NCBI GenBank assembly: GCA_977030845.1
Contig: OZ365110.1
Span: 27,032,001 to 27,096,000, forward strand
Direction: 5' to 3'
DNA: 64,000 nucleotides
Origin: Fimbriosthenelais zetlandica
Taxonomy: Eukaryota
Shown here: in pieces, positions 3,268-55,494 of the stretch
Position numbering within the stretch: the stretch's first letter is position 1
Layout: every line of letters begins with the position of its first letter
Program-made: the position numbers and the translations under genes
Notes under the pieces: model-generated
The model's database searches: none
What the model was told of the DNA's origin: nothing
Seen by the model: the letters and a program-made list of their open reading frames with translations, nothing else

Positions 3268-3282
3268 CCCCCCCCCCCCCCC
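3268..3282. repeat. C15 homopolymer
   Basis: Seen directly. Confidence 0.9.
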
Positions 3283-17400: not shown

Positions 17401-17482
17401 ACTCGAATATTGTATGCTTAAATGTTACTCACTTGTTGCAAAAACTCAATCTTGTTCTTTTTTTATTTTTTCAGGTGAGTGA
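17401..17482 (+). other. candidate recursive splice site RS1 (3'ss fused to 5'ss, zero-length exon)
   Basis: AG-free 17401-17472, branch-like TACTCAC 17426-17432, tract CTTGTTCTTTTTTTATTTTTT, then CAG (17472-17474) directly followed by GTGAGTGA (17475-17482). Confidence 0.75.
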
Positions 17483-20067
17483 TTGATACACATACGTGGA
17501 AGTGGTCTAGGGTAATACTATTAGGTTATCCCACCCACCAGCTAAGTCTTTTCATCAGCCTTATGCTTTATGGACTAGGGCCTATCATATATGAGCTTTG
17601 GGTACGAGAGGGGCGGGGGAAAGGGCTGGATTATACGGCCAATATAGTGTCTTTTCTCTATAGCCTTGATTACACATACTATCCCATTTAGCAACCTTGA
17701 GAGGCCACATTATTTCAGCGTTAATCCATAGATACGTGGGTACATTTTCCCGCAGACGAAATTGCCTCGTCCATGACCCCCCGAATCTTGGTCTATCCCT
17801 TGGTATCCCATAATTGATAGAGTTTTCCGTTGCTTGATCCCATCGGAGATTGGTCCATATGCTCCATGGAATGAATGATTTAGCTCTGACTTTGTCCATT
17901 GCACTGCTCCGCCTATACTGTTTCATTGGGCTCCGGAACCATCCATTCCTATTTGCCTCCCAACGATATCTCTTCTTCAATTTAACTGCTGTCACCCCAA
18001 TGGGAAATCTATGGTACTTGCTTCTGTAGTTTAGTAGGTTGTTGCTCGTCCATTCCAGTCTAGGGTTACCATAAATGTTTTGTTCCTCCACTGAAATATC
18101 CACTTTTTTAAGAGAGAGAAAAAAATCTAGTGGGTGAATCTTTTTGGAAGGCTGTCATCACACTGAGGGTGAATGGTTGGAGTGCCTTTGGGGAGTTGAT
18201 GAGGGAAGGGTTGGTGGGAGGAGTATATAGGGAGGGGATGGGAGGTGCTAGGGGATATGGTTGTAGTACTAGTGAGAGGGGTGAGGATGTGGGATTGGCT
18301 TTGCTTGTATCATGTGTTAATGTAGTGGCATGGCGTGGATCTATAATGGGCCCTTATCATGTCCGCCCATGCCAGCTTTTACCGGCCTCAGGAGGGACCG
18401 TTCACCGTACGTCTATCCCAATAAAAGATAGCCAGGAGGGAAAGGCAGAGCAACTCCTGCTGTTACTCTTACTCCCGCCTCTACTTCCACCTTCAGGAGC
18501 TCCTCCTCTAGCTCAGGCTTCATGTACACCCAGGTTTGATTTCTACTGACAACCTGAAAATACCTAGACTAGAGTGCCCCGTCATGACCTTTTATGTAGG
18601 GTAACAGATCACCCTTTAAGAAGTGGTTCTTGAGATGGATGGACAGGCCATGCTGGCTGGTCCATTACCTTGTATCGTGACTCATGACTCATGGCTTTTA
18701 TGCGTACATGTTCATTACATAAAGGATGACAGCTTAATTGTTTTAATATAGACCTGTGCTTAATAGTTATTGATACCGGACTATCGGAATCATAAACATA
18801 CATATTATAATAAATATTTTCAGTATACAGGTCTGTACAAACAGTTGTAGGCCTGTAATAAAAAAATAACCAGTCTGTTCCACATATCATAGTGCAGTCA
18901 TCTGTCATCATGTACTGCATGAGTAGCTCTTGACAATAGGGAACAGCATGTGGACCATTCTAACATTAACTAGGTTCATGACTGGATTTACATTAAATTG
19001 ACTGATCACTATACACGCCTGAATTTTATTAGGTGAATGGGTTCATTGCGTTTTCCTTGCGGGGTCCTATTCTAAAGAATAGCTTAGCCGTCTTGAGTAA
19101 TTGACGAGTGAATTGGACTGGCGTATACTGCAGAGACAATGATGGACATCTGCCAAGGTTGCCAAGGACAAAGCGCTTAGGCATAAAGAAGATTTGGGAC
19201 TCAGGTGGTCTCGAAATTATTAGACTTTATAGTCGCGGGGTACTTGGTCCCCGGGTCAGTGTGGGGTTGATGTGAGGTCGAAAGTATTAGGCCAGGGTGG
19301 TGTGGCTGAGCCAAGTCATTCTCATTGTCCTGTAGGGCTTATAGGCTGGATAGGACGAGAAATGGGTGGTTGGGAGGAAGGGGATTGGTGAGAGGAGACA
19401 GGGATATTTAACGCTTTGTTTTCTGTGGCTATTAAGGCAGACAAATAGGGTATAAAATCAACTAAAACGATAGACCTACATCCCGGGAGCTTGTCTACGC
19501 CGGGTCTGGGCTGTCAGTGGCAGGCAAAGAGGATTACATCCAGATACCAACCTCTAATTGCTGTGCCTGGGGCTCTGGCTGGAAACAAGAGAAAACACAA
19601 GGGAATAAAGTCATCATTTTCTATCCTAGACCTCCCAGAGACTCTACAGTCCTGCCAGCCGACCCCAAATTAAATGCTTTGATGGCTGTCGCAAGAAACA
19701 AAAATCTTCACGTGCCACCCTCTTTTGAAACAGTAGAGTTTGCTTGGTGAAGGGTTCAAAATGAGATTTCCTTCTTATCGTCATGAAAACATGCAATGTG
19801 TTTTGTCTCCTTCCAAAGGAAAGGAAATGGAAGGGGGAGGCTTTTAAAGTCATTCCCACGAGAGTGTTTTCAGATGTGCTTTGAAGAGGGGGGTCAAGGA
19901 AGGGTGGGGCACGTGGACTAGAGATTCTCTCTCACTCCCCTTCTCTCCTTCTTTCTCCCTCTCCCCATGTCGTCCATCAAAATGGTAGGGTTGGATCTCA
20001 ATGTGTGTGAATGAATATAAGAGCGTGGGTGATTGTATGGGCAGTGTAATCAGCGCCTCCCAGAAAA

Positions 20068-20110
20068 GGGGTGGGGGTGGGGGGCTCACACTGGGGGGCG
20101 GAGAAAGGGG
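20068..20110 (+). other. G-quadruplex-forming sequence
   Basis: Five G runs (G4, G5, G6, G6, G4), the first three separated by single-T loops. Confidence 0.55.
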
Positions 20111-22312
20111 AGGACAAGGCAGGTGGGTGGACCATATTTAACATGCCCGGGGCTGTTGCAAGACTATGACCATTGGCAGTGGCTGGCAAGTGTAGCCGGG
20201 CATTCAGATCCGCCCCTTTGTCATTCGCTGCACAACCCCATGTCGACACGAGGAGTAAAAATGGCTGCCGTGATCGATAATCCCCAGATAAGGGCAGGCC
20301 TAACTAGAATAAAACCTCAAGGTATTAGGTGTAGAAGAAACAGATCGCCAGGAATGGAGGTTCCAGGAGGCGTGCTTTGTGTTTCATGGGTCTTCTTATA
20401 CTGGTGGGAGGTCCAAGCTTTTCTCATACAAAATCCTGCTTCATTCAAAGCTGACCCTGCTTGTACACGATTTTCAGCCTTAAATCTTTGGTTTGAGGTC
20501 ACTTCTAGAATCTAGATCCTGTATACTGAAATTTACTAGTCCCCTGGTAGGAGTTCGTTCACTGTGAAAAATCTAATTAAGCTATATATAAGAACGTCTG
20601 AAAAGTATGTTGATCCTTAGACTTAATTAAATTGTATTAAGTAAGACTATAATAAGTAGTCCACAAGGGAGTGAAGCAATCATGATCTGATCAACAGAGA
20701 ATCTAGCTCATACAAGTGTATAAAATAGTCGACACAATTTACAGCTGTCTGTATGCAGGGGGTTATATATCCTATGATACAGGTGTTATGTGAGAGGTTG
20801 ATTTGACAGTCATGAGATACTAATGGTATGGAAGTATCAGCGAGCCCTAATCCAGGCCCAGCCTTGTGTAAAGGCACAAGGTCCAGGGGGCACATACAGC
20901 AGGCTGCCACTCACCCCACCCCACCAACCACCCTCATCCACCCTCTCCCTCCCTTACCCCACTAGCAATATCTGCTAGTGGCAAATGCTGTCACCACAAC
21001 ACCAAGAATCGATCTAACCTTGACTTCCCCCCCCCCCACTTACCTCCCCTCTCTCTATAAGGTGGGGGTGTAGAGAGGTACTACTAGATGTGGGCTAGTC
21101 AAGGCTCAACTGTGAATTCCCCACATCTTGGGTCAACTCCCTCACCACTCAGACCTCACTGCGTGGCTACGAATGTTGCCTTTCATAGCCAGACTCGCAT
21201 TGCTTTTCAATATGCCTCCGCGGTGCTAGCTCATTGACCTTGGTTCAATGGATATAGATCTCATATACAGGTTTTAATTGAAGGCAGTTGTCAGCTGGAA
21301 TCAATGGTCAACATTTCTCTGGTTTCATTAGGGTTAGATTGTGTTGTTAACCTTTACCGTCCGTTTAGCCATATATAAGGCTACGCTTAGTAGAGGTAGT
21401 ATATGGAAAGTGGGCTCATAGAATGGCAAGCACCTGACGTGTAGTATATGAAAAAATGGCATTGCTTCTGGAATCTTACACAGTCAATGTCCTATGGTAT
21501 AGTCTTCCTCAATGGAATAGGTTTTTTTCTCTACTGCTGATCCTGTTCTAAATTGTAAGCCTGTTTGAGATGGTGAGCGTTCTAGCAGCATCATGACGGC
21601 TGTCAGCTAGTGAGGAATTGTCTTAGCCTAAAAAGCTATGATAAATCATGGATTACCCATGGCAAAGCCGTCCGCTGTCTCCCTAATCCCTGTAGATTTC
21701 ACTGCTTCTCTTCTTATGCCATCTACTTACCTCCCCATGTACCACTCTCCCAAGTGTCTGTCAAAATATTGATTAAGCAAGCTTCCAAATATCATTATTA
21801 CCCTATTCTCTGTATTGGTGCATGGTACATACGTGTTTTGCCCTCATCCAGCGAGTTGTTTATTTCCCCTACACACTTCTACACATGTCATTCTGCCACC
21901 CATGTCTTGGTGGGCACTTAATATCAGTGCAAGTTGTGATTACACGACCTAGTGAGTGAGGTGTTAGCACCGTGAAATTAGCGCCTGGCCGAAGGGCGTA
22001 GGCAATGTATGTATATGGAGTGGGAGATTCTCTGCCTGAGAGATCTACGGTATCATATGCTTCACTGTACTCACTTTACTACATGGCTGACTGCAAAGAC
22101 GAGGATATGACATATCGTGTTCTCTCCCTCTATGCATGTAGAAATTGCAAACCCAGAACTAATCATTTGTGAAGTATCATGAGTATGTATGCGTATGCAT
22201 ATATTTTTTATGTATTTTTTATGTACACTGCAAATTATGTCCGGTATAGTTTACAGGGGGGTTCTGTAATTCCTATTGAGGAATTTTACATGGTTGCAGT
22301 AGGTCTACTTTA

Positions 22313-22342
22313 ACCCTGGATTGGCTACCCTGGATTGGCTAC
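22313..22342. repeat. 2 x 14-bp tandem repeat ACCCTGGATTGGCT
   Basis: Exact tandem copies, each with an ATTGG. Confidence 0.85.
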
Positions 22343-24214
22343 AAAGCAGTTCCTGTATTGGAAGTAATTAAAAATGGATTTCTTAATATTAAATTAGTTA
22401 TAGTATGTACCTTCAATTCAGAATTATTATGGTTTACTGGTACAAGGTTTGTGAGATATAGATTAGTATATTTACTTGAACACAACCCAGATGCTGTCAG
22501 CCTCCTATGACAGTCTAGAACTAGACTTTGCCTCTATATAGAACTATAGTCATGTCTATATACTCTCTGTAAGGTGTCTGTCTTTATACCAAAGGAAATA
22601 AGGGGAGAGGGGAGATGTAAAAAGTGAGATAAGAGATATAAACTAAAGAGTTCATTAAGAAAGTACCACGGCAGTGTCAGCACCTCAGCCTTCCCATCGT
22701 GGGAAAGTGATTTTTCTTAGCAGGGCCTTCTATTCATAGTGTAAGTGTCTAATTCCATGCATGCCAGGCTGAGCCTCTTGAGGTAATGAATTGAGAAAGC
22801 CTGTGACTAAAGCCCAGGCACTGAGCTATAACCAAAGCATATGGGTCCCATGCATATCCTCCCTGCTGTCTCTCTCACACCGCCATTGTCTCTCTTCGCT
22901 TGCAAAACAATTAGTACAGAAAGCACGCTGCTGCTTTTTCTTACTGCCTAATTGAATCAGAGGGACAGGTCTTTCAGGAAAATCTGTGTCAGGTCTGATG
23001 GAAATGAGTGTGTTCAATCTCCTATCGAGGCGAATAAATCAAACCAGATTTGGCAACACCCAGTGTCTCCGCAGACCAGCCTGTGTTTGCTTACCAATGA
23101 GCATCCCCTGCACGGTCTCCCACTCTTCCCACAACTCTTCAAATTGGACAATTTGAGGTACAAAAGAAACCCACTATTGTTTGACCTGAGAAAAAACCAC
23201 GATTCCTGACATTTGCTAAATGGAAATCCTGAGTATTTTTAGAGGCGCTTCTGTATTTGCCATTCGGCGAGGAACAAATGTGGTGTCGATTTGTTCACAT
23301 TATCCGTAAAAAGGATAATCTGAAGCTTATGGTGGAGAACAAAGATTGCGTTTTATTCATTGTGTCATCTGACCATGGGATCAGGAAAGTTACTTTGAAA
23401 TAACACGCTGGCACATACAAGGCTTTTTCTATCCAAGTGAGCTCGGGTCGTGAATGGCGGGGATATCTGTGTTAATTCAATAGATGCTAGTAGCAGTGGC
23501 CCTCGTCACCCTACATTCTGATGGCTGATTCAGATGCCATGTTGCCTAGCAGAGATTTGAATGGACGAAGGAAGGCTTTCCTAGAGATAAAGTACAAAGG
23601 AGGCCTATCCATCCATGAGGAAGAATTTAGAGGCTATAAACAATGGGGTCTGGGAAGGCGGTGCGTGCTAATGTCTTTCTTGTGTAATGGGAGAGGATAT
23701 GGAGTTAATCAATACGTCTTGAAAGCTATTTTCCCCCTTTGAACAACCTAGCATCATACATTAAATTCCCGGGCTCATTAGCTCTACGTCTGCAACGTCA
23801 ACACAAATAAGTCTTCCTGTCGTTTTTCCTCTTCAATGTGCAGAAGAATACAAAACTTCAATGAAGGTTGCTCTCACCTCCTCTTCCCCATTCCCTCTCT
23901 GACTTCCCTCTCTTTCTGGATGCCTTCCTGACGACAGGCCTTGTAGTGAGAGCCGAATGAAATGTCACAAATCATTGAAAACGAAATTAATGCGTCCTAA
24001 TGTATTTAGTCTACTGGTACTGTGTGATCTCATTTTACATAATCCATAACTTTAATTCACTTTTCCACAGGGACATTTTAAATTCCTTTGTCCGCAGCAT
24101 TTCTGCTCTGGAGGTCTTCATCTCTCTTTTTTCCTGACTCCTTAATCAGTTTTAAAATCATGTGTTCATGAAATTTCCATGAGTTGCGAACAGACAGTTT
24201 TTGCTTCCTATTGG

Positions 24215-24260
24215 ACTCACCTACAACAAACGCCAAATGAAAGTCAGCATAAGAGTGTCA
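24215..24260 (-). other. weaker minus-strand fused 3'ss/5'ss site
   Basis: Minus strand reads GCTGACTTTCATTTGGCGTTTGTTGTAG|GTGAGT with about 44 nt free of AG. The tract is interrupted by G. Confidence 0.25.
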
Positions 24261-26059
24261 GAAACTGGAGGCCCTTGTTAATCCAATGTGGCAGCTCCGA
24301 TAGGATTCTAATCCCCTACTACATGAAGAGTCTTTGTTCGCAAACGCGCTGTCTTTTGTATGGCAAAGCATTTGGCTCACGATGAATGTCACTCTTTGAT
24401 AGGTGACTCCCAAGCCGTTCGAAAGGGAGCGATCCAAGTAGGGTATGATTTATTTATTTGTATCTTTCAAGGCTTGCAGTCAGGAAACTGGGCTTTAATC
24501 CCATCCCGGAAATGCAAGGCATTGTCTGATCCTTAAGAGTCCCGTCTGAAAAGTGATTTCAGATCGCCCCACATTGCTATTGCCTTTCAGCCTTGAATCA
24601 TTTGTCTGCTTCACACATAAATGCTGAATCATTGCTATTCACTTCGTCTTGCTTTAGAAGCATAGAGCAGTATATTAAATAATTGTTATTCCACTTTTAT
24701 TAACATGGTTAATTCTGATAAATTCCTCAATGAACTATTATTGCCTTTTAATGCTAGTTATGTACCGAAGACATGACTGTGTTTACTTGTCTATGCTACT
24801 GAGTTGGACTGGACATAGAGGGCTTGATTGGCGAGTCTTTACTTGCCAAGGATGAATAAAAGTTCAGCCCAGGGCCATTACAAAATCCTTTGAAGGCTAA
24901 ATACTACATTGCAAGGCATTAATCATTGCAAACATCTTCTCTCCCTCCACTTTCCAACAAGATTTATGCCTTCCTCCAGCCTATACATAGAGGTTTAAAG
25001 CTTTGAATCCTGTATTATAGAGGCCCTTGAACCATTCCCAAACGCCGGTTCATTCAAAAGACTAACATGTTTTACGAGACTCGGAAATTGATGCAGCTAG
25101 GTAAAAATCTGCACGTTGAAAGGTTGACCGATCTATATTTGTTGCACGATTGAAGCCCGGGATAAAGACCCCTGTCCAGCCAGAGGGTCAAAAGAGAACA
25201 CACTGCTCCCAAATGGAACAATCTGATAGGCAGATGAAGGATAGCCTTATTCCTGAAATTGGATTGCCTCTAAGTCTTGGAAAAGGAGCAGATGCTTTTA
25301 TGCTTCCTTTTTTCAATTTTTGTTCCCCACTTAAATATCTCAGGTGTTTGTAGATGGAATAGAAGGCTGGGATGATGTAGGGCTGGGACCTGTTGCTTGT
25401 TTTACACGTACTTGCGCTATAAAGGTTCTATAAAGGACGGTGTGTATGACAGTCAAGCTCCTTTTTCCTGCCCTGATTGGCTTGGCCTCTCTCTACTTTT
25501 GACGTCTAACCGCCCATAAAGCTGATCTATGTTTTGCAGCAACAGTTTTAAAACTTTTTCGTTGTCAGCATTATTTAAAGAAATGACTGTAAGAAAAAGT
25601 TTAGCTGGGTTGTGCATGGATCATGTACATAAAAGTGATTGACTCTCCTTGCTTCCTTTTGGTTTATTATTTCAGTTTTAGTTATTACTCGAACCCTTTA
25701 AGTGTGTGAAATTTGTATCGATGGATTTTTGCCTTGAAATTCTACCAAGAGAACACTCCCAAAGTGAATCTATTACGTGTTGTATTCAATTTAGTGCCAA
25801 ACGAGGTCACCGGCCAGCCACCCAATCGATGCTTATCAGATTAAAGTTTTTTTTCTAACCAAGGTTCTTTCTCCTCTGCTCTGATGTCAGCATGAACCTC
25901 CTGCCTACCTCCCAAATAGAAGCCTTATTGACGGGTATGACACGATTACAGCCAAATCTCGGCCTACCACGTGCTCACAGCTCCCCACGAGATTTGGAAC
26001 CGAAGCGTGGCGGTGAAATTTGGGTGGCAAATGCTGTCCTCTGGTGGATGAAAGTGGAG

Positions 26060-26285
26060 GATGGTATTAAGGGGGAATGATGGCGGAGCGCGTCAGCTAA
26101 GCGTCTCTCGATTTATGGCTCACGAGCCTCCGCGGAAACGTCCAATTAAGGCAAAGGTCAGAGAAGGTCACGTGACCAACGAGGATTGATGACGCCAACC
26201 TCTGACCTGTAAATGCACTGTCACCGATGCTGATTGGACGATTAGTTACTATGGCAACAGGTCACGACCAATGAGGCTCGTCAAC
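26060..26285. promoter_or_regulatory. CpG-rich enhancer/promoter-like motif cluster (DR4, E-box, RFX X-box, two CCAAT boxes)
   Basis: AGGTCAgagaAGGTCA 26155-26170, GGTCACGTGACC 26166-26177, GTTACTATGGCAAC 26245-26258, ATTGG 26233-26237, CCAAT 26268-26272. Confidence 0.5.
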
Positions 26286-29550: not shown

Positions 29551-32500
29551 AAAGACATCCACGTAATTGTCAGAGTGCATATTGCCTTTTTTCACTTTCC
29601 ATCGAAATTGCAGAAGGAGAAGAATGGAAGGAGGGTCTGGCTGGGAGGTTTGGGGGGATGAGAGAGGGGTAGATGGTGGTTTGATCAGGGGGAATAGACG
29701 CCCAATGTGTTGACAGGAACAACACACTGTCCTGATTATTGCTCATTACCGAAACTGCTTCTATCAGAGCTGCTTCCCCCAAGGTTAACTACTGTGTGGT
29801 CACTTACTGAGCTGTTCCCATTTTATGACACCCAGATCTAGTGGTCGTATGGCCCTGTTTGAACGTTTCATATTGAGGTATGATCTAAGGGGGCATTCTA
29901 AAGCCACATAGATGAAGTAGGCTACATGTGCACAAAATATTCTTATCTTTGCTGTACATTTGCTGCATTAATCACGCTCCATATATATGATGCATTTTTA
30001 CATCACTGTATCATTAAAAAGCGCCTGCAACAATATGGCCGACATTGCAATCTAACATGAACTGCGCTGGAATTAGCAGATCGCCCCTGTCTTCAATTCC
30101 CGCCACAAGTCGTTAGGGAAAAGAACAGCTTGATTAGTCACGCATCGTTAAGGGGACATTTACATTACAAAAAATGGCTGTACGTGTGTTATTTGTGTGC
30201 CTTGTGTTTGCCGAGGTAAGATAGAAAGCATCATTTGAGGGGATAAAGACACGTTAATTCAGCTAAAAAGGCACTGTATCAAAGGGCTAGGGAATACTTA
30301 TCACTGTCTTGGGAAGACTTTTTCAAACCCTTAACTGATGCTTTCTTCAACTCCAATACTTCGCTTAGCTAGTACAGTGAGGTGCGCATTGCGGAATTCA
30401 GAATACACTTACATTATATCATTCTTTTATTGTTATATAGGTTCGGGGTTTGTTCTTGATGTTGTGCGGGACATGCACTAGGGCTAACAGTGCAGGGCGT
30501 GCAGTGCATCGAAAAACTACTCATTTTTTCATATGACGAATACACACGAAACTGCCGTTGACAAATCTAGTAGCATTACAGGACCATTCACATTGTAATA
30601 ACCCATGAACACCCCAAGGAAAATCCAATATTAACTCCTCAATAGGAATAAGATGATTACACGACGTGAGTTTGAAGAATTGAGTGATTGGGTATAGATT
30701 CTTCCACCCATGTATTGATATAGATGACCTATAGTGGTCTGTATAGGCCTAACCTCCGGAGGAAATAATGAATGATTGATCCCCTATTCCCTGATAAATC
30801 AAGATATTGATCAGATGAAGGATGATTTTCGCCCTTGACAAGATGTTTGTTAGGCATGCATTATTGAATGGGGTTCTCATCCATAACTTGGCGTGTCCTT
30901 CTCCATGAATGAGGCCTTGTCTCAGACCATAGCTGACCCAAACTCCAGCGGTAGGCGGCTGGCTGTATTTATCTAGCTGGAGGTATCGATCAATTCCCCC
31001 TCCTTATTGTGTAAAGAAATGGTCACTCACTCCGACCAAGCTTGCTTTAATCTCCAGGGTATGAAAAAAAGACTTCCCTTTGCAAAAGATCCTCATTTGA
31101 CTTGTTATTCAATTTCTTGCTGGATTTTTCTTGCCGTGCTTGTCATTGCCGGTGTCTTGCACCAATTTGGTGTGATCTTGATTGGAGATACTTGATGTGC
31201 AGGCCATAATGTATTGTGTTCGCCTATAACAAATTGCTCTCATTGCAGTGTACGCATAATTTAATCTTAGATGTAATTATTTCTCAATAATTCCAGAGAG
31301 TTGGTGACTAATATATATCTTGAGCACGAGAGGAGTCCCTGAATTCTTGGCGGCATGGCTAATTGGCCAATTGATGAGAAAAGTAATAGCACCTGCAGGA
31401 CATGCTTAGTGCTTAACCTTTCCTAAACTGCACTGGACTTTCCTTTAACACTGTCCTTGAAGCAGTACCTACTTTATATTTTTTCTATCTTTAACACACA
31501 ATGGGGAGGTTGTATAAGGGACAGTGTCTCCGAGACACTCTGGATGATAAAGCATCCCACAGGAAATTTAGACCCGGCTACTGGCCTTCCCCGGAGGAAG
31601 CTGTAGACTGAAGGTCCATTTATAATAGATGAGGGCCTAACTTAGGTCCTCAGCCCAATGTCGCTGGCCCTACATGAACAATAGTCAACGAGCAGCCTAA
31701 GGAGGGGTGTCCATCTTATACCTCCCTGCCCGAAACTCTTAAACCATCCTCCTCACGAGTACTCTTTCGTGTAAGTACCGTAAGAAATCAAGAAAAATAA
31801 CCAAAAAATTGACTTCGTTAAGCGCTTTCCTTGACCTGACGGGTTGGAAATGAAATTGTCAGGAGTTTAGTTTAAAGTTTGTGGGAAAATGCGTCGAAAC
31901 CTCCGGTTGGTTGTTCTTTTTTTACAGGCAATGCTTTGACATTTAGAAACAACTAATACACTTATGGGAAAAAAGGAACCTGGGAGGTGGAAAAACTATA
32001 CCTTGTCCATTTCTCCATTTTGGGGAAATGGGATTAATCTGAGGATGGTGTCTGAGCTGTCCAAGAAACGTAATGCGATAATTGGATACTTTAATGAGTT
32101 AAACGCATTGACAATCCATTCATAATGTTGAGGGGAGGCTCAGAGTCAGGATATTAATTTGTTAGATGAACAAAATATGTTGGTAGTAGACCTATTATAA
32201 GGCTGTCTTATAACGATACAAGTAATAGAGAAAGCATCCAAGTAATGGATATGTAAAAAGTAATTTCAATGGGAGAAAAGTGTCGGGAGCTGTGATGGAG
32301 GAGAGAGATTGGGTTCCAGATTTCCTGTCCATGGAAAATGTATTATTAGAATGATGAAGTAAAACAAGATCTAAATGGCTTCATGTACACATGTGCTAAC
32401 ACCTGGACATTTTATTAGAGCATTTTAGAAGTCAGTGGTAGAGTGAATTTCCTCTATAATTTAGAGGAACAAAATAAGGGATTCCTCATATATTGATAGC

Positions 32501-32699
32501 CATGTCTAATTCGGACATGTTGTACATAGATCACTGTGTCCATGGATTGTTTAGAGAGTGGGACAAGATGAAACTGAAAGGAAAGGGGATCGATGGGAAA
32601 GACACTGGGGATCGAATTAAGGAAGAGAATAGTCAGGTAATTGGATGCATAATTTAGAGAAAGGTATAATAATTACTGGAGGACATACAGTCCCTTAAG

Positions 32700-35786: not shown

Positions 35787-35891
35787 CCTAATGTTAATGG
35801 CACAATTTACATTATACATTGTACATTTTACATTGTGAAATGACACATTTTACAATACTGATTTTATTCTTTTTCCTTTTCAGGTGAGTGA
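35787..35891 (+). other. candidate recursive splice site RS2
   Basis: AG-free 35787-35881, branch-like TACTGAT 35856-35862, tract TTTTATTCTTTTTCCTTTT, CAG (35881-35883) + GTGAGTGA (35884-35891). Confidence 0.78.
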
Positions 35892-36895
35892 CCTCTTTGT
35901 TAAAAATGATCCCAAGGCATCAATTGATAAGTATTGAACTCCTTGGATATGCAGTAGGTTACACTGCCTATAAAATTTTACACTTTAGACGCCTAATGCT
36001 CCTGGCATGCATGTAGATGTTCTGTGTGATAATCAGTCACACGTAAGACCTTGCCACTCGATAGGACTGGATATCTTTTACATTTCTACAATAAGTAGGC
36101 CTAGAATTTAGCTCACAGACTGGGGATAAATTTAATTAAGGCCATTACCCACAGAAGTATTGCACGTGAGTTGTTCTGCCATGGACGCTTTGATATCTGG
36201 ATACAAAGTCGGGCCTAACTTCCTCCGACCAGGGTGTCAGAGAAGCCGGTACGTGTTACGAAGGGAAATCCTCTCTTCTGTACCTCCTCATATTTACGGC
36301 ATTTGAGCATAACGAGCGGAAAATTAGAAAGCTAAATATGGAATCAGTATTATGTGTCGTCAGGTTTTTATAATACAATGAAAGTCATGTCAAGTCCATG
36401 AAGTCGGCAGGCCGAGCATTCTGTCAAAGTTAAGCGATCATAATTATTAGCAACACAGAAATCTTGAAGTAGGTCTATGTCAATGATGTGTAGTATTGAA
36501 CGAAGGTTGGGTATTTTTAGGTTATGAACATCCCCCTGATGTATCAGCCCCTAAAGGTTAAAAGAAATGAAGGACAACCATAAAATCTGTTCCCACTGCC
36601 AATGACAGATAAAATGCTTGCCCTTAGTTTTTGTTTTATCACCTTCATAAGCTTTTAGGGAAACTCGCGTGAATGGGTATTAAGTGATGGGATTTGAAAT
36701 GCATTAGTCAAATTGTTTTAAATGCCCTTACACAATCCAACTATAACTCCATTCAGAAGAATGACTCTTTTTGTGTCATTTCCGTTGAAATTGCACTCAG
36801 GAAAGGAGAATAAGCTATTTAGCGTAAATGTCCCGTGGGACTGAATTTTAGGGATAATGTTGAGTTTTAAAAGTAAATGTTCACATGGTTACGAA

Positions 36896-37505: not shown

Positions 37506-37514
37506 GAAATTGGA

Positions 37515-43985: not shown

Positions 43986-46900
43986 CATTATAATTCTTTA
44001 AGATAAAAATTGGCCAAAGAATCCCTGAAAACCGAAAGAAACTGGCACAGCATACCTGCAAAATCTATAAGGAGTTTTACCTGAGAGTGATTTTTACAGC
44101 TTCCTTTCTCAGCGTACAGAAACAGGTACAAATATGGGCGGGGTATCATAATATTTTACTTAGCATACTCTTCTTATGTCTCAAAGCCTGCAGTGAAATT
44201 TGAGGGGAAGTATAGAACATTCTAGTGTATCTTAGCACACCATATATTATATTCGGTTTCGCATATAGATCTCAAATATAGAAGATGAAACGAGGGATGT
44301 ATTGATATAGTGGGGAGGTGAGTGGGGTCTCTACTTTGTCTCCTGCTCAAGGAATTGGCAAGGGAGAGTGGCGCCCACATGGTCGCCATCTTGTGGACCT
44401 TGTCATCACTAAAAGTGAGCCAGTTGTCAGAGGAATGCACCTGTAACTGGCAGAGTGATATGAGTAGAGATCAAGGACATTTCTGACATCAATATATCTT
44501 CTTTCTCCTTGAGATATTTCTTCTCTTTTAGGATAATATAGTAAGCAGAGGAGTTATTTTCAAGTTTTATGTCAGGGCTTTGGCATAAATATATCTAACG
44601 TTGATTTATGGATATCCCCCAGGTTATCCAAGGTTTTCCTCAGTAGAATGGAATGAAGTTATGTATCTTCTTTTATTAAACCGAAATTCGTGAATAATAG
44701 GAAGATTTTATTACGGTAAAACTAATACTATATTTATTAGATACGTTACGATTCAAACTGCAACCTTTCTTGGCATGACTATATTACCATACTTGACTTG
44801 AAGAGCAATGAAGGCCTACATAATCTGAACACATACTGATTAAACATCCTAGAATATTTTTTTGGCACTGATATAAACTACATGGTCTACACGATGTAAT
44901 ATGTTTACACAGTACATGACGTTCATTGCAAATAACGCTCGCACATTTTGTTACCATAGCAGTAGACCAAGTGTTCCCAATAGGCCTTCCCTGAAGAGTT
45001 ATTATAGCCCTGTGAACTTCATCTGATTTGAATAAAATGGTATTATAATAGAATAAAAATAGTATCATTACTATAGGTATACATCGAACCTTTTACTAAG
45101 GGAAGCTTTTCCAGCTTGTATAAGAAATGTCTTACCATTAACTTCAAAGAGACCTGTAATGACTGACATAGGGAGACATGACTTCCTTCTGGGAATGTAC
45201 ATTCATCTCCGACCAATTCTACATCTCTCTCAGGATAATTGAGTAGCAGGGATCAGGAGTTTCTCCTCATTTAAACATGTACGTGGGAAATTGTGTGTCT
45301 CTGAGTCTATTATCGTTACTTTGATCTTTTCTTTTCATCTTGTGACGAGCAGTACCATAAAACGTCTGTACATCCCGCTACTCTCATCAGTGTGCTAAAT
45401 GTTTCTTTTAGATGACTCAAATCTGGGAAGGCATCTTTAAAAAGTATACATGAGCCACGCAGCATCGGATTTGGACTGTAGATAATTATGTAATTATGTA
45501 TAAATGTCATACGTTGTATTTCATCTGATTTAATTAATATTTTTGTTGGGTTACTCCGTTCTATATGAAACTCGCAGACAACACCAAGGTGATTGGTGTC
45601 AGTCCCATGCAAGACAGCTGCAGCTGTCAACTATCTGTCACTCCAATTCTGGATCACTGTCATATTTAGTCGAGTGTGGGATTGGTGCAATTGGGTGCTA
45701 GATGCAGTCCTTTCACCCAAGACACTCAAAATGTTAGTTTACGATTAGAATATAACAGTGCAGAAGTGAATAATGTACAATTTGTGAGATTGCTCCATAA
45801 AGGGTGCCTCCACCAACCACGACACATTTCCGACACAATATATTTGTGTCGGGAGTATGTACTTGACGTCACTAAATGAACTATTAAACCTAGTTCTTGT
45901 CAATTATGATTCAGGCATAATATAAGTTTTCTGCATGGGTTTTAGCAATGGTTCTATGGTTGATACTAGGCTGTCTAATATAACTGTACGCTCTCCTCCC
46001 ACTGACTGTGTGTGGTTTTACATTGAGAAGTGGAGGAGAAAATTCACCATTGTTCCCTGATTGATCAGCACCAGGCGGGCCCCGTTATAGAGGCAGCTTT
46101 CAATGGAGCGGAAAGAACACTTCATGTTGCTTAAACTACATCCTGCAGCCAGCGCTCCTGCATTGAAATCTCCTTTGTTTCTCGCCCTATCAATAAAAGC
46201 TCAGCTCATGGCTTTTATATTGCAAATAAATTAGCCATCAGTGAAGTATGATGAAGTGATGGCTTCATTAATGCACGCTGGGTTGTATTTTACAGTCCCT
46301 CTGAAAAATAACTCAATCCAGGCCTTGTTATATAGATTTGGGTGATAATGTGATTAATTTTACCCACAACTAAAGATTTGCTAAAATTTAATGGAACTGG
46401 ACCTGTTTCTTTTGAATTAAACCTTAGTTTAGTGGGAACAGCTCGTTCATAAATTTCCCTTATTGAATCCTTTTCCATGTCAATGCCTTGCAATCTTGTA
46501 GTCATTTTCAGGAATAATTTATGTTTTATTGGGGTTGTTCTCTGAAATGCTTTATTATGAGGTTTATAGGATTTCAATGGCAAGAGGAAAAGCCATGGGA
46601 ACAGGGAATGAGATATGGAGAATTGTAAAGAGAATGGAAATGCTCAGGCCCCAGGTGTTTGGTGGTGGAAGAAAATTCAAAATCCAGTGCCAGCTACTTT
46701 CAATTCATCCAGGGCTTTCTCCGTCTCTTGCCTAAGCCCACACCTCCTCTTCCCCTGTCGCTGAAAGGAAGATTTAGCTTCAGTGGGAGGGTGTGAAGAC
46801 ATTTCCCCCTCCCCCAAGAGGATCCATCCACTGATCCTTTGCCCGAGTTTCCAACGGCAGGCGACTGAAAATCGCCCCAAGGCGCGAGAATTAGATGGGA

Positions 46901-47929
46901 CCAAATAAACCCGCCCGGCATGAATATCTCATTTCACCACAAACAAAGGCAGCTCCCATTTGTGCCAAGAAAAGCCGCGCAGAAACTGTTATCCGGTAAT
47001 AGGGAAGAATGGAAAACAAAGGACATGATTGCTGGAGTCCACTTTTTGAAATTTTCAAGTGGCGAAAAAACATTGCAAGCTTAAAAAAGGACTGAGGGTG
47101 AGAGTGACTTTTACAATGTGGTGGCTTCACGTCTGGGGGTTATTTTATCGCTGCCAAGAATTAAATAATCTTCTGGTTCCTGGAAATTCGAGTCAGGCAA
47201 ATTTAAAAATTGCAGGGCATACAGTTATTTCTGGAAATATAAAATGATCTAATATGTTCCAGGAAATATATTATGGGTAATCCATCGGTACTTGTTTGTC
47301 ACTCATTGTTAATGAAACATAAGCTCAGTCCTTGCTTTCTCTGTGATATGTAGCTCCCATGTAGCACCATCATTCATTACATTAATGTTCACCTCACATG
47401 ATATATCACCACTTCAAAGCTGCTGGCTTATTATATATTTATACACATCCTGAGTTTCCTTGTCTGGGATTTTAATACTGGATATAGCCCATCCATCCCT
47501 GTCACTTTATCCCATGCCTCTCTTTATCACAAGCTCTCCCTTAGTCCTAAAAATAAGTACCTTGCCTTTATGTTATCCTTCAACACATTCATTTTTTTCG
47601 AATTCCTCCATGTAATTTACAAAGATATACAAAAAAATCTTATTTCCACATTATTTTCAGTTTTTTGCCACACTTCCCTTCCCTCGATGCAAATACTTGA
47701 TGAAGCAATCTCAATCATATAATCAAATGCTATTTAAAATGTGTTAAGTAAAGTACATCCATCCATTAACTCATTAAGAGGGATTAACAATTTTCTGATT
47801 AAAGCTGACAGGAATTATCTTAGTGAGTGACAGCGGTTGGGAAGTACATTCATGGCGAGCATTCAAAAATGCTTCAATCATTTTAATGGCGTTCCTCTGG
47901 ATGTAATGCAAAGGGGAGTTGTTGCAAAT

Positions 47930-47944
47930 GGGGGGGGGGGGGGG
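47930..47944. repeat. G15 homopolymer
   Basis: Seen directly. Confidence 0.9.
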
Positions 47945-48519
47945 AAATCCAGTATTATTTCTCTCCAAGCCGGAGATGTGTGGTCCAGGGGTTACTTGTG
48001 TATTTTGCTCTGGCTTATAGAATGTGTACCTCACACGTAAGCTTTTGTTACTTGAGGGGATACCACATCCATGTGACACCTCTCCTCATTTGGTAAATGG
48101 TTACCCCCTAAATCCTGTCTTTCCTCTCTCTTGCTCTTGGTTCATTAGGACCCTGGCTATCTGCAGCCCTAAGTATCTCGCCTCTTTGTGTTCCCGTGTT
48201 TATAGCATGGGCAAAAGAAGGTAGTCCAACATATATCCATTGTCCACTCTTATTGTATATACACTTCTTACTGAATATTGTCATGCTTGCACTAGGTGAT
48301 GGTTGGGAAGCAGGGTCACATTGGTAGGCTGGGTAACGTATATTTCTGTAATTAATTTCTGGGAAATCGGTCTGCTATAGAAGGGGGAGGTGGGTCCCAC
48401 CTCCATGTGGTTAAAGGAAAACCGTGGTGAATTTGTAAATTGGAGTCATTCACAAGCATATATATTTACTAACGTTTCATGGCAGTCATATTAAAACATT
48501 CCCTATCGTATATAAGCAT

Positions 48520-48672
48520 TCGCCACCCGCCAAAAGAAAATCGCATGATTTTTCCCTCTCAAACAGAGCTGACATCTTCCCGGAAGTCCCGGCGCTCAAA
48601 CACCTCGGAAGTTTTCATGGGGGGTACAAAAGAGCGGCCTCTCTTCAACTGCGCATGCGCTAGCGGAAGTTT
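48520..48672. promoter_or_regulatory. housekeeping-type promoter-like island (E2F, three ETS, NRF1)
   Basis: CCCGCCAAAA 48526-48535, CCGGAAGT 48580-48587, CGGAAGT 48606-48612 and 48664-48670, TGCGCATGCGC 48650-48660. Confidence 0.5.
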
Positions 48673-49106
48673 TGATTTTAGTGGGTCACACATGTGCTAT
48701 AGCCCTAGAGCACATTTACACACAGATCTCACTCTTCTTACTTTTTAATTTTATGCTTAGACTCACCTGCATTTGCTGGAGCAGCAAGCTCCTTAGTTTT
48801 CACGTGCTCCAGCATCGGTACTCTTTATCTTCCTTAATTAAGCCATAAGCAATCACAATTAATGCACTGACGTCTGAGTCTGTGCCTGTGGTGCCGAGTG
48901 TGAGTCTCCCCTCAAGTCAACAATGCGTCTGGTGCTCTCCACACCTACACAGTACTCTCAGTTTCCGAACTGGATTCCATGTCCTCCTCACCTTCCAACT
49001 CCTCTCCTTCTCCTACACTGCCCGTAGGTTCATATAGATAAAGCACAAATGCCGAGGAGTGGCATGAAAAATCAGAATCGCTATCACTATCCAAATATGT
49101 ATCACA

Positions 49107-49150
49107 GGTAGCCATGTTGGTTTGTTTTGGTAGCCACGTTGGTTTGTTTT
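49107..49150. repeat. 2 x 22-bp tandem repeat GGTAGCCAYGTTGGTTTGTTTT
   Basis: Units 49107-49128 and 49129-49150 differ at one base. Unit 1 carries a YY1-like GCCATGTTG. Followed by ETS sites at 49171-49177 and 49234-49246. Confidence 0.85.
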
Positions 49151-49251
49151 GGTGGCGGGGAGGTGTTTAACGGAAGTTCATTTCTTTTGTACCTCCCAGC
49201 ATTGGGTAATGAAGACTTCTGAGGTGTTTGTGAGCCGGACTTCCGGAAATA

Positions 49252-49275
49252 TTTTTTTTTTTTTTTTTTTTTTTT
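49252..49275 (-). repeat. poly(A) tail of the LINE (T24 on + strand)
   Basis: 24 consecutive T at the 3' end of the minus-strand element, with AATAAA overlapping the start of the tail on the minus strand. Confidence 0.9.
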
Positions 49276-49667
49276 ATTTATCTATATTTATACAGGAGGG
49301 GTAGAATACATGTATCCATTGAGTCCGCAAACACAGTCGGGCCGGGACCCGTTCTTCCCTGTGCTTCCTGTCCACAAACAATAAACAATAACTCGCTACT
49401 CGAGAACACAACCCCTAATATCCCATTAAATTAAATTATATACAGAATGATTTATGAGAAAATTTAAACAAAATGAGCAGAACAAACTAAAAGAAAACAA
49501 ACTTAAGAACTAAATGAACTAAAAAAAAGGACACATAAACGCGGACTAATACAGGAGACATATGAAGCTACAGAAATACAGGACGGAGAAGAAAGGTAGA
49601 AATTAATCAAAAACTAAAGGTGTACACGAAAAGTAATATGAGTCAGACAAATAATATTCAGGGGATT

Positions 49668-50906
49668 CTAATCAGGGAAAGACGAAGATTGGAGAAGAGC
49701 TCTCAGAGACCGTTTAAATCTTGGTGAATCACTAATAGACCTAAGTCCTGGGGAGAGCTTATTCCAAAAATTAACTATACTATAAATTAATGAATTTTGC
49801 GTTTTTTTAAGTTTAGGAATTGGCAATCTAATAAATGGAGCTTGTAGTGCTCTAGTTGAATGTGTAGGATTAACTATGTATGGATTTAAAAGATTAGAGT
49901 GATGTACTATCCAATGCCCCAACTTTCCCAATATGAAATCTTGCCTCACATCTAACTGCATTACATTACAGTCTTTGTATAGGGACATGACATTCGATCT
50001 TACTTCCCTTTTGAGGACAGTCCTGAGAGCTCTGTTAACCAGTCTTCCCAACTTAGTAAAGGATTTTTGTGAGACAGCAGTGTAACAATAGAGACTATAA
50101 TCGATCAGTGGAAGTATATAACTTTTGAAAAGCTGGATTGCAATGTCAGTATTAATAAACTTGCGAACCAGACACAGGAGATATACCTTGTCATTCACCT
50201 TGGATACAGTATCATTAAGGGATTGTTCAAAAGTGAGCATATTATCCAACCTAACTCCCAAGTAGTTAAAACTAGTTACCCAATTGATCAAGGTACCTGA
50301 CAGTCTAAGCTCAAAGTCTTTTAAATTCAACCCTTTTAGCAAAGAGGGAATACCAAATACCATCGCCTCTGTCTTCTTAGTATTAACGGTAAGCCTATTT
50401 TGAACTGACCAATTATATACTTTCTGAAGGTCATTTTGTAACACAGAAACTAATTGAGATGCATCATTCCCAGAGTGTACTAAAGCCACATCATCCGCAT
50501 AAAGCACAAGATCACATTCACAGTCAGTGTTAGTTATAATATCATTAACAAATAAGCTAAATAAGGTCGGCCCCAACGAGGACCCCTGCGGTACGCCGTA
50601 GGAAACGGGTGCTAACTTAGAGTATGTATCTGGTGCAATCTTAACTTGCTGTTGCCGATTAGAAAGGTAACTCTCAAAAATTTTGTAAGAAGAATCATCA
50701 AAACACAAAGTCTTAATTTTTTTAAGCAATACATTATGAGAAACGCTATCAAAAGCTTTTCTGAAGTCAATAAAACAACAGAAAGTTAACTTTGACTCGG
50801 CTTGTGACAAGTTAATCTTAGACAGCAGATGCGTAATTGCATTAACAGTACCCCTGCCTTTTCTAAAACCATATTGTGCGTTAGCGAGGATATTATTAGA
50901 CTCCAT
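49668..50906 (-). CDS. LINE ORF2 fragment: reverse transcriptase domain plus C-terminal region (no endonuclease, N-terminally truncated)
   Basis: 412-aa uninterrupted ORF with non-LTR RT motifs QYGFRKGRGT, FIDFRKAFDSVSH, GVPQGSSLGPTLF, LYADD and FNYLGV. The C-terminal FWNKLSPGLR..S..RFKRSL is typical of CR1-group elements. The start Met is probably internal to the original ORF2. Confidence 0.9.
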   Translation of the reverse strand: MESNNILANAQYGFRKGRGTVNAITHLLSKINLSQAESKLTFCCFIDFRKAFDSVSHNVLLKKIKTLCFDDSSYKIFESYLSNRQQQVKIAPDTYSKLAPVSYGVPQGSSLGPTLFSLFVNDIITNTDCECDLVLYADDVALVHSGNDASQLVSVLQNDLQKVYNWSVQNRLTVNTKKTEAMVFGIPSLLKGLNLKDFELRLSGTLINWVTSFNYLGVRLDNMLTFEQSLNDTVSKVNDKVYLLCLVRKFINTDIAIQLFKSYILPLIDYSLYCYTAVSQKSFTKLGRLVNRALRTVLKREVRSNVMSLYKDCNVMQLDVRQDFILGKLGHWIVHHSNLLNPYIVNPTHSTRALQAPFIRLPIPKLKKTQNSLIYSIVNFWNKLSPGLRSISDSPRFKRSLRALLQSSSFPD

Positions 50907-53900
50907 ATACTTCGTGAGTTGAGAGTTAAGAATTTTTTCAATGATCTTACCAGGAATTGGAAGAATATGTCCGCCTCAATGCAGCGGAAAAAATCACGCG
51001 ATTTTCTTTTGGAATGTGGCGATTGTTTAAATACGATATGGAGTGTTTTAATGTGACTGCCATGAAAGGTTAGTATATATATGCTTGTGAATGACTCCAA
51101 TTTACTAATTCACTAAGGTTTTCCTTTAAGAGAAATGGGCCTTGTGGCCTACAGCGGCCATTGTGCTTGTCTGGAGAATGGTAGGGGTATATATGGACAA
51201 CTGTTACAGTGGTTGTAATTTTTTTTTTTTACGTTTTTACTATTTTAGATTTTTAAGCAGTAAGGTATACATCAAAAGTACATTAGTAGTATATCAGCTT
51301 TGGAGGTGTGTAATAGAACGGCTATGGGAGTTTATTCTAAGATTTCTCATGCCATGTATTATGGCCTCATAGCCCCTATAAGTTCCACATATAAAATGCC
51401 CTGCTGGGCTTTTACATTAAGCCCCATCTCATTGCCAGCAGGATAAGGTTCCCTGCAAACATTACCACTTTTGAAATACTACTTCACCACGCCATCCCCA
51501 AAGACATTTTTCTTTATACTACTCACTATGATAAAGCAGGCCTATTCCTTACCATGCTCGCTCTCTCTGTCTTAGAAATAAAAGCCTTGAAGATGGCCAT
51601 AGATTTTCTCTGCCAACTCCCTAACGTGCGATAAATGGGGATCAGCATTTTTCTTGTTAATGCTGTCACAAGGGGGTGATAGAAGTCAAGTACAGGATGG
51701 TTGTCACTGCTGGGCCGGGGCGCAGGATGCTAACAGAAGACAGCTTTGGCGCGTGTGGTCTATGAATGTGAGCGGCTCATATATTGCCATTACAGCGTCC
51801 AAATAGCAGCGGGGTGCTGGTAGGTGCCCCTCACTGCTCTGTCAAATAGGTACAAAGAGTGGTCTACTGGTGGCCCCTGACCAGCCATGATTATGCCTTC
51901 GTTCCTGGTGTTAAAACTGGGGGTCTATCTCCACTACGCATCAGTTTGTTTCCATTTTTCTTTCGCAGAACAAACCTCTCTGGGAGTTGAGGATGATCTG
52001 AGTGACAGTTAATTTAAGGAAGGCCATATATTTAACGCTCTGCCTTTTCCCCAGCAGAGACTGCTATCTAAGCCAATATGTAGCATGTACTCAACACAAC
52101 AATATATTATTTTCACGTTTTTAAATATTTTGGTTTGAGATCTGAACTGAATTATTAATAAAACGCACGAAGTTACCATGTGTTTAATTATAGGCCTACT
52201 TATTTCTGGGGATTAGCTTTTTCGGGATTTTATCGGGACTCGACTTGTTTTCCATCTTCTCAATGTGAATTATACAGGAAGGCTTTCTGTCATTGTGGAT
52301 TTAATGGCCATGAAGAAGAATTTAAGCGTCATTACGCTTACAGAGCAAATCCCTTTTACCAGTAATCACTTTTCATTGCCAGGTTTGGCATTTCGCCCAG
52401 GCACTTACTGCATCGGACAAAGACAAGACAACGCCTTTGATTTGTCACACTGTTCTCATTGTATTTTAATTGTTACAAATAGTTGGGAGGAATTTGATTC
52501 AAGTTTATCACCTTTGAAATTGTTGATCTGTGGAAACTTTTTTAATGGAAGAATGATGTCCTGCAGTGTTGTTACATGATGGAACTACTTGAGGGGGGAT
52601 TCTGTATTTATAAATGCCTTGCTAACAATGAATGTCCATTTTAAGCGTTGCTGCTGGGTGTGTTTGCGTGCAGATATGGGGTACCACTGTAAAGTGAGCC
52701 ACTTAGCTCTGTCCCCTCGTCCTTTCCAGCAATTTGCCCACTCGACCTGGTCATCTTGTACGATCCCCTTCTTTAATATATTTATCCTTTCATTGTCCTT
52801 CAAAAATGGGACCTTCCCTCCCATCTCTGTGAAGATTGATGTCAATCTATTATTCAAAAACCTTGATTTATCGCCCGTTTGTTTATTAAACAGGCAGGCA
52901 TGGCGGTGGTTTGTTGGTTGGCACTTTATCATGGGGAGCGGGCATGCGTCCGCATCAGGTTCAGGTATTCACTCACCATTGGACCTTTTTCAACCCACCA
53001 AGGCTGATGAATGGCACTAAATCTTGCCCCAGAGGTCACCGGTCAGGCCTGCACTACTTTCACGCTACAACAGCGCCCATACTTCCGGTTAAGGTTGTCA
53101 TTTGCGCTGTGTGACGGTCACACTCTCCAGCCTCCATATCCCTCCGCCTCCGACTTAGAAACAACCTCTGTCCATGAAACCGTTATTCCATTCAGAAGCA
53201 GCCCCATCATATCTTTCAATAGGGGTTCTATTTTGCCTATTACCGTATATTTTTGGCGGCCCATAACTATTATATACTGACAAATTTAAATGTGTTAATT
53301 TCATATATGATTAGGAGAAAAAATGATGAAAATAGTGCACTTCAAAAATTAATGAAACAGAAACTGACGTCAACTCCACGCTGTTCTCCCGGCCATCTTG
53401 AATGAACTGTGTGTGAAGTGAATGGAGAGAGAGAGAGGGAGGGAGTTGTAGGGAGTTTCTCTATGGAAATGACCTGACTTAACTCGGGTTGGGCCAAAAA
53501 ATAAGACAGCTTAAGCTGAGCTCTGCCCAGGATAGATCCAACCACTCCCGTAGGGGAACTACCGCCTATCCTGCTTTCCATATACAATCCGATCATAAGA
53601 CCATCAGCAGGACGGGGCTCTAAGCGATTATATATAGTCATTTCGAAGGTGATTTCAGTGGAATACCTTCGTCAAAACAAACAATTTCAATAGAAACATT
53701 TCGGCAATTGTTTTTTTTGCCACAGGCCCGTGGGGAAATGTAGGAGATGGAGGTCAAGGAATGACCCTTAAAAGAAGTGCATTACACGCAACGTTTTTTG
53801 CCCGTTGTTTTTTTCTGGCTCGTATGATTGGAGTATTATTGAAGGAAATGGAGGTTCTTCTTTAATTCATATTGGACAGATACCAGAAGTATCATGGAAG

Positions 53901-54299
53901 TATCAAATGGCATTGCGTGCATGCAATGTGATATCCATTCGGGGTCAGACAAGTTAACATGGTCATCAACCATGCATACGTGACTCTTTAAGTACATATT
54001 ATAACTTTAAAATATTTGGATCCATGCTTGAAAATGAATGCCAAATCCAGATGTCAGTTTTCATGTGATAAAGGGAACCTTGCCAAGTTAATTAACACAT
54101 CTCTCTGACCCTGACTATTGCAATTAGGTTCCCATGCATCTGCCAGACGTGCCGTACACAGCTGTGGCAGCAATGCAATAATTTGAGCGAATAATCAGGA
54201 GGAGTGCCTGGTGAGTTGAGTCCAACAAGTATGCTTATCTTTTTCAGGGACTTCAGTGATAATTATCATTAGGACGCAATAAGCACTGCGGAACATGGG

Positions 54300-54562
54300 C
54301 AATGGATGGTTGGCAGGTTTTAAGGGGAAGAAGGAAAGCGGGAGAGAGTCAGTGGGGAAGGCAGTAGGAGGGGTAATCAATAAGAGGAAGTACATGAGAA
54401 TTGGAAAAGAATCAAATCGAGCAGAATGGGGATGTATATACGGAAGGGAAGCGATCTATGATGTAGAGGAAGTTTCCAGAAGTAGAAGGAGTAAGAGCAG
54501 AAGGAAACAAAGATGGGGAGGGGGGGGGGGGGCGAAGAGAAGGACAAAAGCAGCAGAAGGAA
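54300..54562 (+). repeat. GA-rich polypurine tract including a G13 run (54520-54532)
   Basis: Purine-dominated stretch. Boundaries approximate. Confidence 0.65.
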
Positions 54563-55390
54563 AAGTTTGAGGGGGTAGAAGTAGGCCATTTTCACACCAG
54601 CTGCACACCTCAGCCCCACCAGCTTATCAGCTGCTGGCTTGTGAGGTGCGAAACCAAGGAATGATTACTCCATCACGAGTGACAAACCCAAACTGACAGC
54701 TGCTAATTGCCCTCATTTCTCCCTCCAGGCCTTCAGTTTCCTTCCAACTCTCAACCAACCTCTTTCTCAAACTACTACCGAGTTTTTTGTAACTACTTCT
54801 GTGAAACTACTGTGAAAGATCCGAATGGTCGATTTCTGTACATGTATGTAAGATACATGGCATTCAAACTTCTCACTATACATTCAGAAACAATGTTATT
54901 TTCCACTCGATGAATTATCACATTCTCATTACATGTACTACACTTGCATCGAGATAATTTAAAATCAACTCCAATCTAATATAATATGATGTATTGCATT
55001 TATTGATGTTTTCCTCCTGATGGGTTGCTGTCAATATTAATCATTTTTCATCTATTTTTATAGACACAGAGAATGTTTATTACTGATTAATATATTCCAT
55101 CTATCAGGAATTATTCATACCTCTATATCAGAACCATCAATTGACTCATCCATTGAATGTGGATGAAAATGGGATTAATGCATTTGGAATTCTTGGCCTT
55201 CATATAAATCATTATAAGTATGTTAGCTCCTTTCCCTATCGAGCGTTTATTACCATTTAGGACCATTGCAATAAGCTAACAGATATTCCTCTAATGCATA
55301 TCCTGCAAATGAAAATTCGCGTAATTGGATCTTGGGAACTCGTATAGGCTATTTATACTTGTCTTATTTCTCTCCTAATATTCTTGTTAG

Positions 55391-55494
55391 CTCAAATGTT
55401 CTGTATGTTTAACTTTATTTTTGTTATGTCTGTTTTTGTGACAAAATATTTTTTACTATAATATATCTTTATAATTTCTTTTCCAGGTGAGTGA
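55391..55494 (+). other. candidate recursive splice site RS3
   Basis: AG-free 55391-55484, T-rich tract ending ATAATTTCTTTTC, CAG (55484-55486) + GTGAGTGA (55487-55494). Branch point less obvious than at RS1/RS2. Confidence 0.75.

Follow-up and report, generated by a model that had tools for sequence, protein, structure and literature searches.

The 64,000-nucleotide (nt) stretch of Fimbriosthenelais zetlandica DNA analysed here (contig OZ365110.1; hereafter the window) carries, on its + strand, three sites at which a very strong 3' splice site is fused directly to a near-perfect 5' splice site. We consider it likely that they are recursive splice sites, i.e. ratchet points or the 5' ends of short cryptic recursive-splicing exons (RS-exons), in a giant + strand intron. 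An earlier interpretation made from the letters alone (the sequence-only reading) had already described the sites in this way. It stands in that they exceed chance expectation, do not derive from a repeat, occur as strong sites on one strand only, are followed by stops, carry TT at -5/-6 and delimit segments of Drosophila-like length; its claims of novelty, of a consensus of its own and of even spacing before an insertion did not hold.

Results

Anatomy of the fused sites

All coordinates are positions in the window, and the + strand is the window strand as read. The 11-mer CAGGTGAGTGA lies on that strand at 17472, 35881 and 55484, exactly where it had been claimed, and there is no other copy on either strand (exact count; 0.03 expected from shuffles). 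Inspection of the sequence at 3/3 sites reveals the same arrangement, namely a long T-rich tract leading into CAG, which directly abuts GTGAGTGA. The sites are as follows, with a slash marking the junction:

17401..17482, + strand: site 1, AG-free zone of 72 nt, T-rich tract, CAG/GTGAGTGA; junction 17474/17475
35787..35891, + strand: site 2, AG-free zone of 95 nt, pyrimidine tract, CAG/GTGAGTGA; junction 35883/35884
55391..55494, + strand: site 3, AG-free zone of 94 nt, pyrimidine tract, CAG/GTGAGTGA; junction 55486/55487

A recount of the AG-free zones yields the lengths given by the sequence-only reading (72, 95 and 94 nt); gaps of at least 72 nt are found at 1.4% of AGs. Pyrimidines fill 18/20, 17/20 and 15/20 of the positions immediately upstream of sites 1, 2 and 3, respectively, and TT is present at -5/-6 in all three. 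The acceptors score 15.0, 14.7 and 11.7 bits in the same order, and the donor scores 12.9 bits at each site. Candidate branch sites, with good complementarity to U2, may also be recognized inside the AG-free zones: TACTCAC at site 1 (17426-17432), whose A, at 17431, is 44 nt upstream of the junction; TACTGAT at site 2 (35856-35862), whose A, at 35861, is 23 nt upstream; and a TACT-containing candidate region at site 3 (55454-55460), with a candidate branch position at ~55458.

Comparison with chance and with repeats

All AG/GT junctions of the window (235 on the + strand and 242 on the - strand) were scored with generic acceptor and donor weight matrices. The fused acceptor and donor scores of sites 1, 2 and 3 are 27.9, 27.6 and 24.6 bits, followed by 19.0 bits for the next-ranked junction on the + strand and 17.9 bits for the best on the - strand. 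In 60 Markov simulations of the window, the maximum fused score averages 18.9 bits and peaks at 25.0 bits, and two of the three sites score above every simulated maximum. A joint filter (YAG/GTRAGT, at least 14/20 pyrimidines, and an AG-free zone of at least 40 nt) passes the three strong + strand sites together with one marginal - strand site, whereas 150 second-order simulations predict 0.013 sites for both strands. It had been claimed from a scan by eye that no other GTRAGT site possesses a strong tract, and this is correct: AGGTRAGT recurs on the + strand only at 44316, where a tract is missing, and five times on the - strand, each time behind a weak tract. Within the window the strong fused sites number three on the + strand, the presumed sense strand, and none on the - strand.

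The marginal site, at 24220 on the - strand, reads ttgttgtag/GTGAGTCC. It has 14/20 pyrimidines and an AG-free zone of 42 nt, and scores 6.3 bits as an acceptor and 10.7 bits as a donor.

The triple occurrence of the 11-mer was rejected as evidence in its own right. Because seven dispersed, non-simple 11-mers reach at least three copies on the + strand, the count alone proves little. The real signal is the joint quality of the splice sites, as expressed in the fused score.

The sequence-only reading had itself raised the concern that the sites might be parts of a dispersed repeat. Within the window, the 300 nt around the three sites show no alignment beyond the tract and the 11-mer, and sensitive self-blastn detects no similarity between the two intervals that separate them. 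A repeat family or a tandem segmental duplication was therefore rejected as the origin of the sites and of their spacing, since the flanks do not align. The repeat search of the window returns only a foldback element and a local duplication, both located away from the sites. Reading the sites on the minus strand, as an E-box (CACCTG) and poly(A) signals in an A-rich complement, was also dropped, because it leaves both the AG-free zones and the exact donor unexplained.

Sequence downstream of the junctions

Two frames meet a TGA inside GTGAGTGA, i.e. in the first 8 nt, and the third is stopped at nucleotides 10, 52 and 61 of sites 1, 2 and 3, respectively; at site 1, stops appear in all three frames no more than 12 nt after the junction. 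The TGA at +6 to +8 would be read in frame if the upstream exon contributed one base of a split codon. Since stops close every frame, the sites are not the starts of coding exons, and the candidate exons beginning there (VSD...) were rejected on this ground and for want of an adequate donor. No GT donor of at least 7 bits is found within 250 nt of any of the three junctions. The weak GT donors in this region are:

17512 (+37), + strand: site 1, AGG/GTAATA, 4.7 bits
+70, + strand: site 2, GCA/GTAGGT, 4.1 bits
+40, + strand: site 3, AAT/GTGATA, 3.0 bits, overlapped by TGATAAGTA

These data bear on the main alternative to recursive splicing, according to which we are dealing with conventional 3' splice sites that belong to short cassette exons (non-coding, untranslated-region or "poison") and with a chance start of these exons in GTGAGTGA. 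Some transcripts of a coding or long non-coding host gene would then include the exons, and the GTGAGT would not act as a donor for re-splicing. Such exons would be served well by the very strong acceptors and could end at the weak GT donors 37-70 nt downstream; moreover, there are published cases of RS-exons that are expressed and of cassette exons whose 5' end carries a donor (PMC8605326; PMC6224609). However, three unrelated exons with identical first 8 bases that amount to a near-perfect donor would be hard to explain unless the donor is used. The downstream GT donors score 3-4.7 bits versus 12.9 bits at the junction, a situation in which the published competition model favours the junction donor, and stops lie in every frame. 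We regard this alternative as unlikely. Under recursive splicing, the weakness of the downstream donors is fitting, because a ratchet donor must win the competition (PMC8605326).

Donor-like elements that lack the invariant G are also present downstream of the junctions:

17539-17549 (+67), + strand: site 1, donor-like G-less element CAG/CTAAGT, 9/11 matches to the U1-complementary consensus
35925..35933 (+43), + strand: site 2, TGATAAGTA, which reads TTG/ATAAGTAT, 8/11 U1-complementary matches, with A replacing the invariant G
55528..55536 (+43), + strand: site 3, the same 9-mer at an offset identical to that of site 2

Taken as a donor, TGATAAGTA corresponds to TG/ATAAGTA, i.e. the U1-complementary consensus with A at the position of the invariant G. 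For a random pair, the probability of sharing a run of at least 9 bases at the same offset within +/-150 nt is 0.00135. TAAGT has 47 copies on the + strand, and a position chosen at random has one at +30 to +75 with a probability of 0.033. The sequence between junction and element is unrelated between the sites. A common RNA fold around the sites was not found (z-scores -0.5, -1.6 and +1.1), and a metagenome scan for the cassette CAGGTGAGTGA-N33-TGATAAGTA returned no matches. In the window as a whole, TGATAAGTA is counted 4 times versus 0.74 expected; the other copies, at 14899-14907 (+ strand) and 30295-30303 (- strand), have no fused splice site nearby.

Search for a host gene and for signs of the transcribed strand

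The stop-to-stop open reading frames (ORFs) of at least 75 amino acids (aa), 111 in number, were compared with Pfam, and no domain was found except the reverse transcriptase of a long interspersed nuclear element (LINE). Exon-like pairs, defined as an acceptor of at least 7 bits, an open frame and a donor of at least 7 bits, number 14 on the + strand and 12 on the - strand, which is the noise level, and none of the ten best splice-flanked exon candidates has a Pfam match. Rfam gives no match on the window either. Overall, the window looks like a single long non-coding stretch.

The observed/expected ratio of CpG is 0.49 overall and 0.40-0.58 per 4-kb bin, with TpG and CpA in excess, and no 4-kb bin across the 64 kb contains a CpG island. 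In animals whose genomes are methylated in a mosaic fashion, gene bodies typically show such a CpG depletion. The pattern suggests that the whole 64 kb is methylated in the germline.

The three sites could in principle belong to different introns or transcripts, with small exons missed between them; each would still be recursive or cryptic, and no single ratchet array would exist. Short exons may escape our screens, in which ORFs below 75 aa were covered for the ten best splice-flanked candidates alone. We nevertheless hold this arrangement to be decidedly improbable, considering that the Pfam signal is confined to the LINE, that exon-like candidates are equally frequent on the - and + strands, and that CpG depletion is uniform and free of any CpG island. 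Finally, it is barely credible that the sites are chance matches or dispersed-repeat relics devoid of splicing function, given that, for all the commonness of triple 11-mers in the window (seven dispersed ones with at least three copies), three sites are observed versus 0.013 expected under the joint filter, two of them exceed all simulated maxima, their flanks are dissimilar and all three share a single strand.

As for the transcribed strand, the poly(A) signals AATAAA and ATTAAA together occur 80 times on the + strand and 114 times on the - strand (p=0.018), the + strand being lower in 7/8 bins. T exceeds A in 14/16 bins, and the LINE is oriented antisense to the + strand.

Over the whole window, GTAAGT is found 4 times on the + strand versus 12 times on the - strand, and GGTAAGT 0 versus 3 times, numbers that are too small for significance. 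The low + strand count may mean that strong cryptic donors are depleted on what is presumed to be the sense strand.

Spacing and inserted elements

The sites are separated by 18,409 and 19,603 nt, the lengths given by the sequence-only reading. Two gaps as similar as these arise among three random points with a chance of ~0.03, and the description "evenly spaced" is thus weakly supported. That reading had further argued that the spacing was nearly even before a 1,716-nt LINE entered the second interval. The LINE is real, with a truncated 5' end, a poly(A) tail and a reverse transcriptase ORF, and it is nested in a larger insertion:

48411-51129: foldback element, 2.7 kb, with terminal inverted repeats at 48411-48592 and 50950-51129
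~49252-50967, - strand: 5'-truncated LINE, nested in the foldback element, poly(A) tail at ~49252-49276
49671-50975, - strand: intact 412-aa reverse transcriptase ORF (Pfam domain), belonging to the LINE

The terminal inverted repeats are ~180 nt long and 83% identical, with ends TTAAAGG..., and the closest protein match of the reverse transcriptase is 36% identical. Subtraction of the LINE leaves 17,887 nt in the second interval, and subtraction of the whole foldback insertion leaves 16,884 nt. Because the interval depends on which of them is subtracted, the argument from pre-insertion spacing is soft; the gap lengths are correct, and the near-even value is obtained only when the LINE alone is removed.

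Elsewhere in the window, a near-identical local duplication occupies 57580-60702, in which 58636-59540 matches 59798-60702 (905 nt, 99.8%) and 57580-57844 matches 59539-59803 (265 nt, 100%). The pieces are contiguous in the second copy and 791 nt apart in the first. Its appearance suggests either that the sequence was duplicated in tandem very recently, with an indel, or that the assembly placed two haplotypes one after the other. At 3266-3300, a long C-run and C-rich tract precede an acceptor-like CAG at 3329; this stretch is of low complexity and unconvincing as a splice site.

Discussion

Intronic ratchet points of Drosophila were reportedly described by Hatton in 1998 and Burnette in 2005, and RS-exons in long neuronal genes of vertebrates by Sibley in 2015. 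To our knowledge, recursive splicing has been shown experimentally only in Drosophila and in vertebrates, two groups in which fully skipped intronic sites are not equally common.

The candidate sites described here resemble Drosophila ratchet points in the juxtaposition (Y)nNCAG/GTRAGT, in an unusually strong pyrimidine tract and in TT at -5/-6, a dinucleotide present in 99.5% of the ratchet points of the fly (Duff et al., bioRxiv 10.1101/006163). They also resemble them in that several sites share a strand and delimit segments of 18.4 and 19.6 kb versus ~18 kb; the recursive segments of Drosophila have a mean of 17,953 bp and a median of 16,368 bp, range from 2.6 to 64 kb and lie in introns longer than ~11 kb (Duff et al., bioRxiv 10.1101/006163). 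In the published model, a cryptic exon of ~50 nt, whose content is unconserved and usually out of frame, has a donor that loses the competition against the ratchet donor (PMC8605326, Joseph and Lai). In the window, likewise, the junction donor is far stronger than the downstream donors, and stops close the short stretch behind the junction. On the other hand, the donor is GTGAGTGA here and GTAAGT in the fly, and the cryptic RS-exon of ~50 nt that flies require, together with its GT donor, cannot be made out clearly; a G-less donor-like element at +43 to +67 is found instead.

The sequence-only reading had presented the array as a new phylogenetic instance. Recursive splicing beyond insects has, however, been predicted since 2009: in sea urchin introns longer than 50 kb, the sense strand carries 0.54 such sites per 100 kb and the antisense strand 0.066, which amounts to an 8.2-fold excess (Shepard et al. 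2009, PMC2773006). The corresponding excess is 21.7-fold in the fruit fly and ~1 in vertebrates, and an enrichment is likewise predicted for the giant introns of non-Drosophila insects (PMC2773006). Our analysis is similar to that of the sea urchin in being a motif-based prediction in a non-insect invertebrate, but the earlier study gave genome-wide counts only, with no loci, arrays or site anatomy. The density found here, ~4.7 sites per 100 kb, is roughly nine times the sea urchin average, in a comparison of one window with a genome-wide figure. Our literature search found no experimental evidence of recursive splicing in an echinoderm.

Vertebrate RS-exons offer a further parallel, in that a very long intron contains a 3' splice site after which a 5' splice site is re-formed (Blazquez 2018, PMC6224609) and a region containing stops would trigger decay if it were kept in the mRNA. 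The vertebrate sites require a well-defined RS-exon whose own GT donor competes, whereas no competitive GT donor is evident here. Intronic sites that are skipped completely are known in vertebrates from just a handful of cases.

If the sites are indeed recursive, the exons of the host gene would lie outside the 64-kb window, and a single intron would enclose all three. As the polymerase passes, the T-rich tract, the distant branch site and the CAG would serve as a 3' splice site for the upstream exon. This first splicing would set the upstream exon directly before GTGAGTGA and re-create a near-perfect 5' splice site, which would then be used to excise the next ~18-19 kb. The intron would thereby be removed in steps of ~18 kb, leaving no sequence of the sites in the mRNA. 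We speculate that the downstream xTAAGT (+43 to +67) probably aids the spliceosome in seeing the site as a tiny exon.

Several observations weigh against recursive splicing as the explanation and should be set beside the evidence for it. No flanking exon or host gene was found within the 64-kb window by the ORF and exon-pair screens with Pfam. Transcription of the + strand is suggested by weak asymmetries alone, none of which is strong, and one of them has vanished: the apparent excess of T-runs (100 versus 61) was rejected as a strand indicator, being an artefact of overlapping counts, and the non-overlapping count is 137 versus 125. A weaker site of the same kind exists on the - strand at 24220, and may be due to chance or to an antisense transcript. 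The signal for the expected cryptic RS-exon of ~50 nt, which should end in a GT donor, is weak (4.7, 4.1 and 3.0 bits at +37, +70 and +40). Furthermore, three sites are too few to yield a consensus or a spacing rule, and the consensus GTGAGTGA that the sequence-only reading had credited to this lineage rests on just these three.

The G-less donor-like element could act as an exon-definition signal of a cryptic exon, although three sites are too few to establish this. A more specific version, which we put forward only as a rather doubtful idea, is that an unspliceable U1-complementary decoy (CAG/CTAAGT at +67 of site 1; TG/ATAAGTA at exactly +43 of sites 2 and 3), and not a real downstream donor, makes each ratchet point recognizable as a tiny exon. 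If this were true, the 3' splice site would profit from exon definition through the decoy, yet the cryptic exon could not be included in the mRNA, and such a design would be safer than the donor competition of flies and vertebrates. Should the G-less element recur at other sites, it would bear on how a "zero-length exon" is recognized.

A clean array of three sites in a non-insect invertebrate provides specific coordinates at which junction reads, a sawtooth of coverage and lariat reads can be sought. Such sites would help to settle whether ratchet points of the fly type were already present in the bilaterian ancestor.

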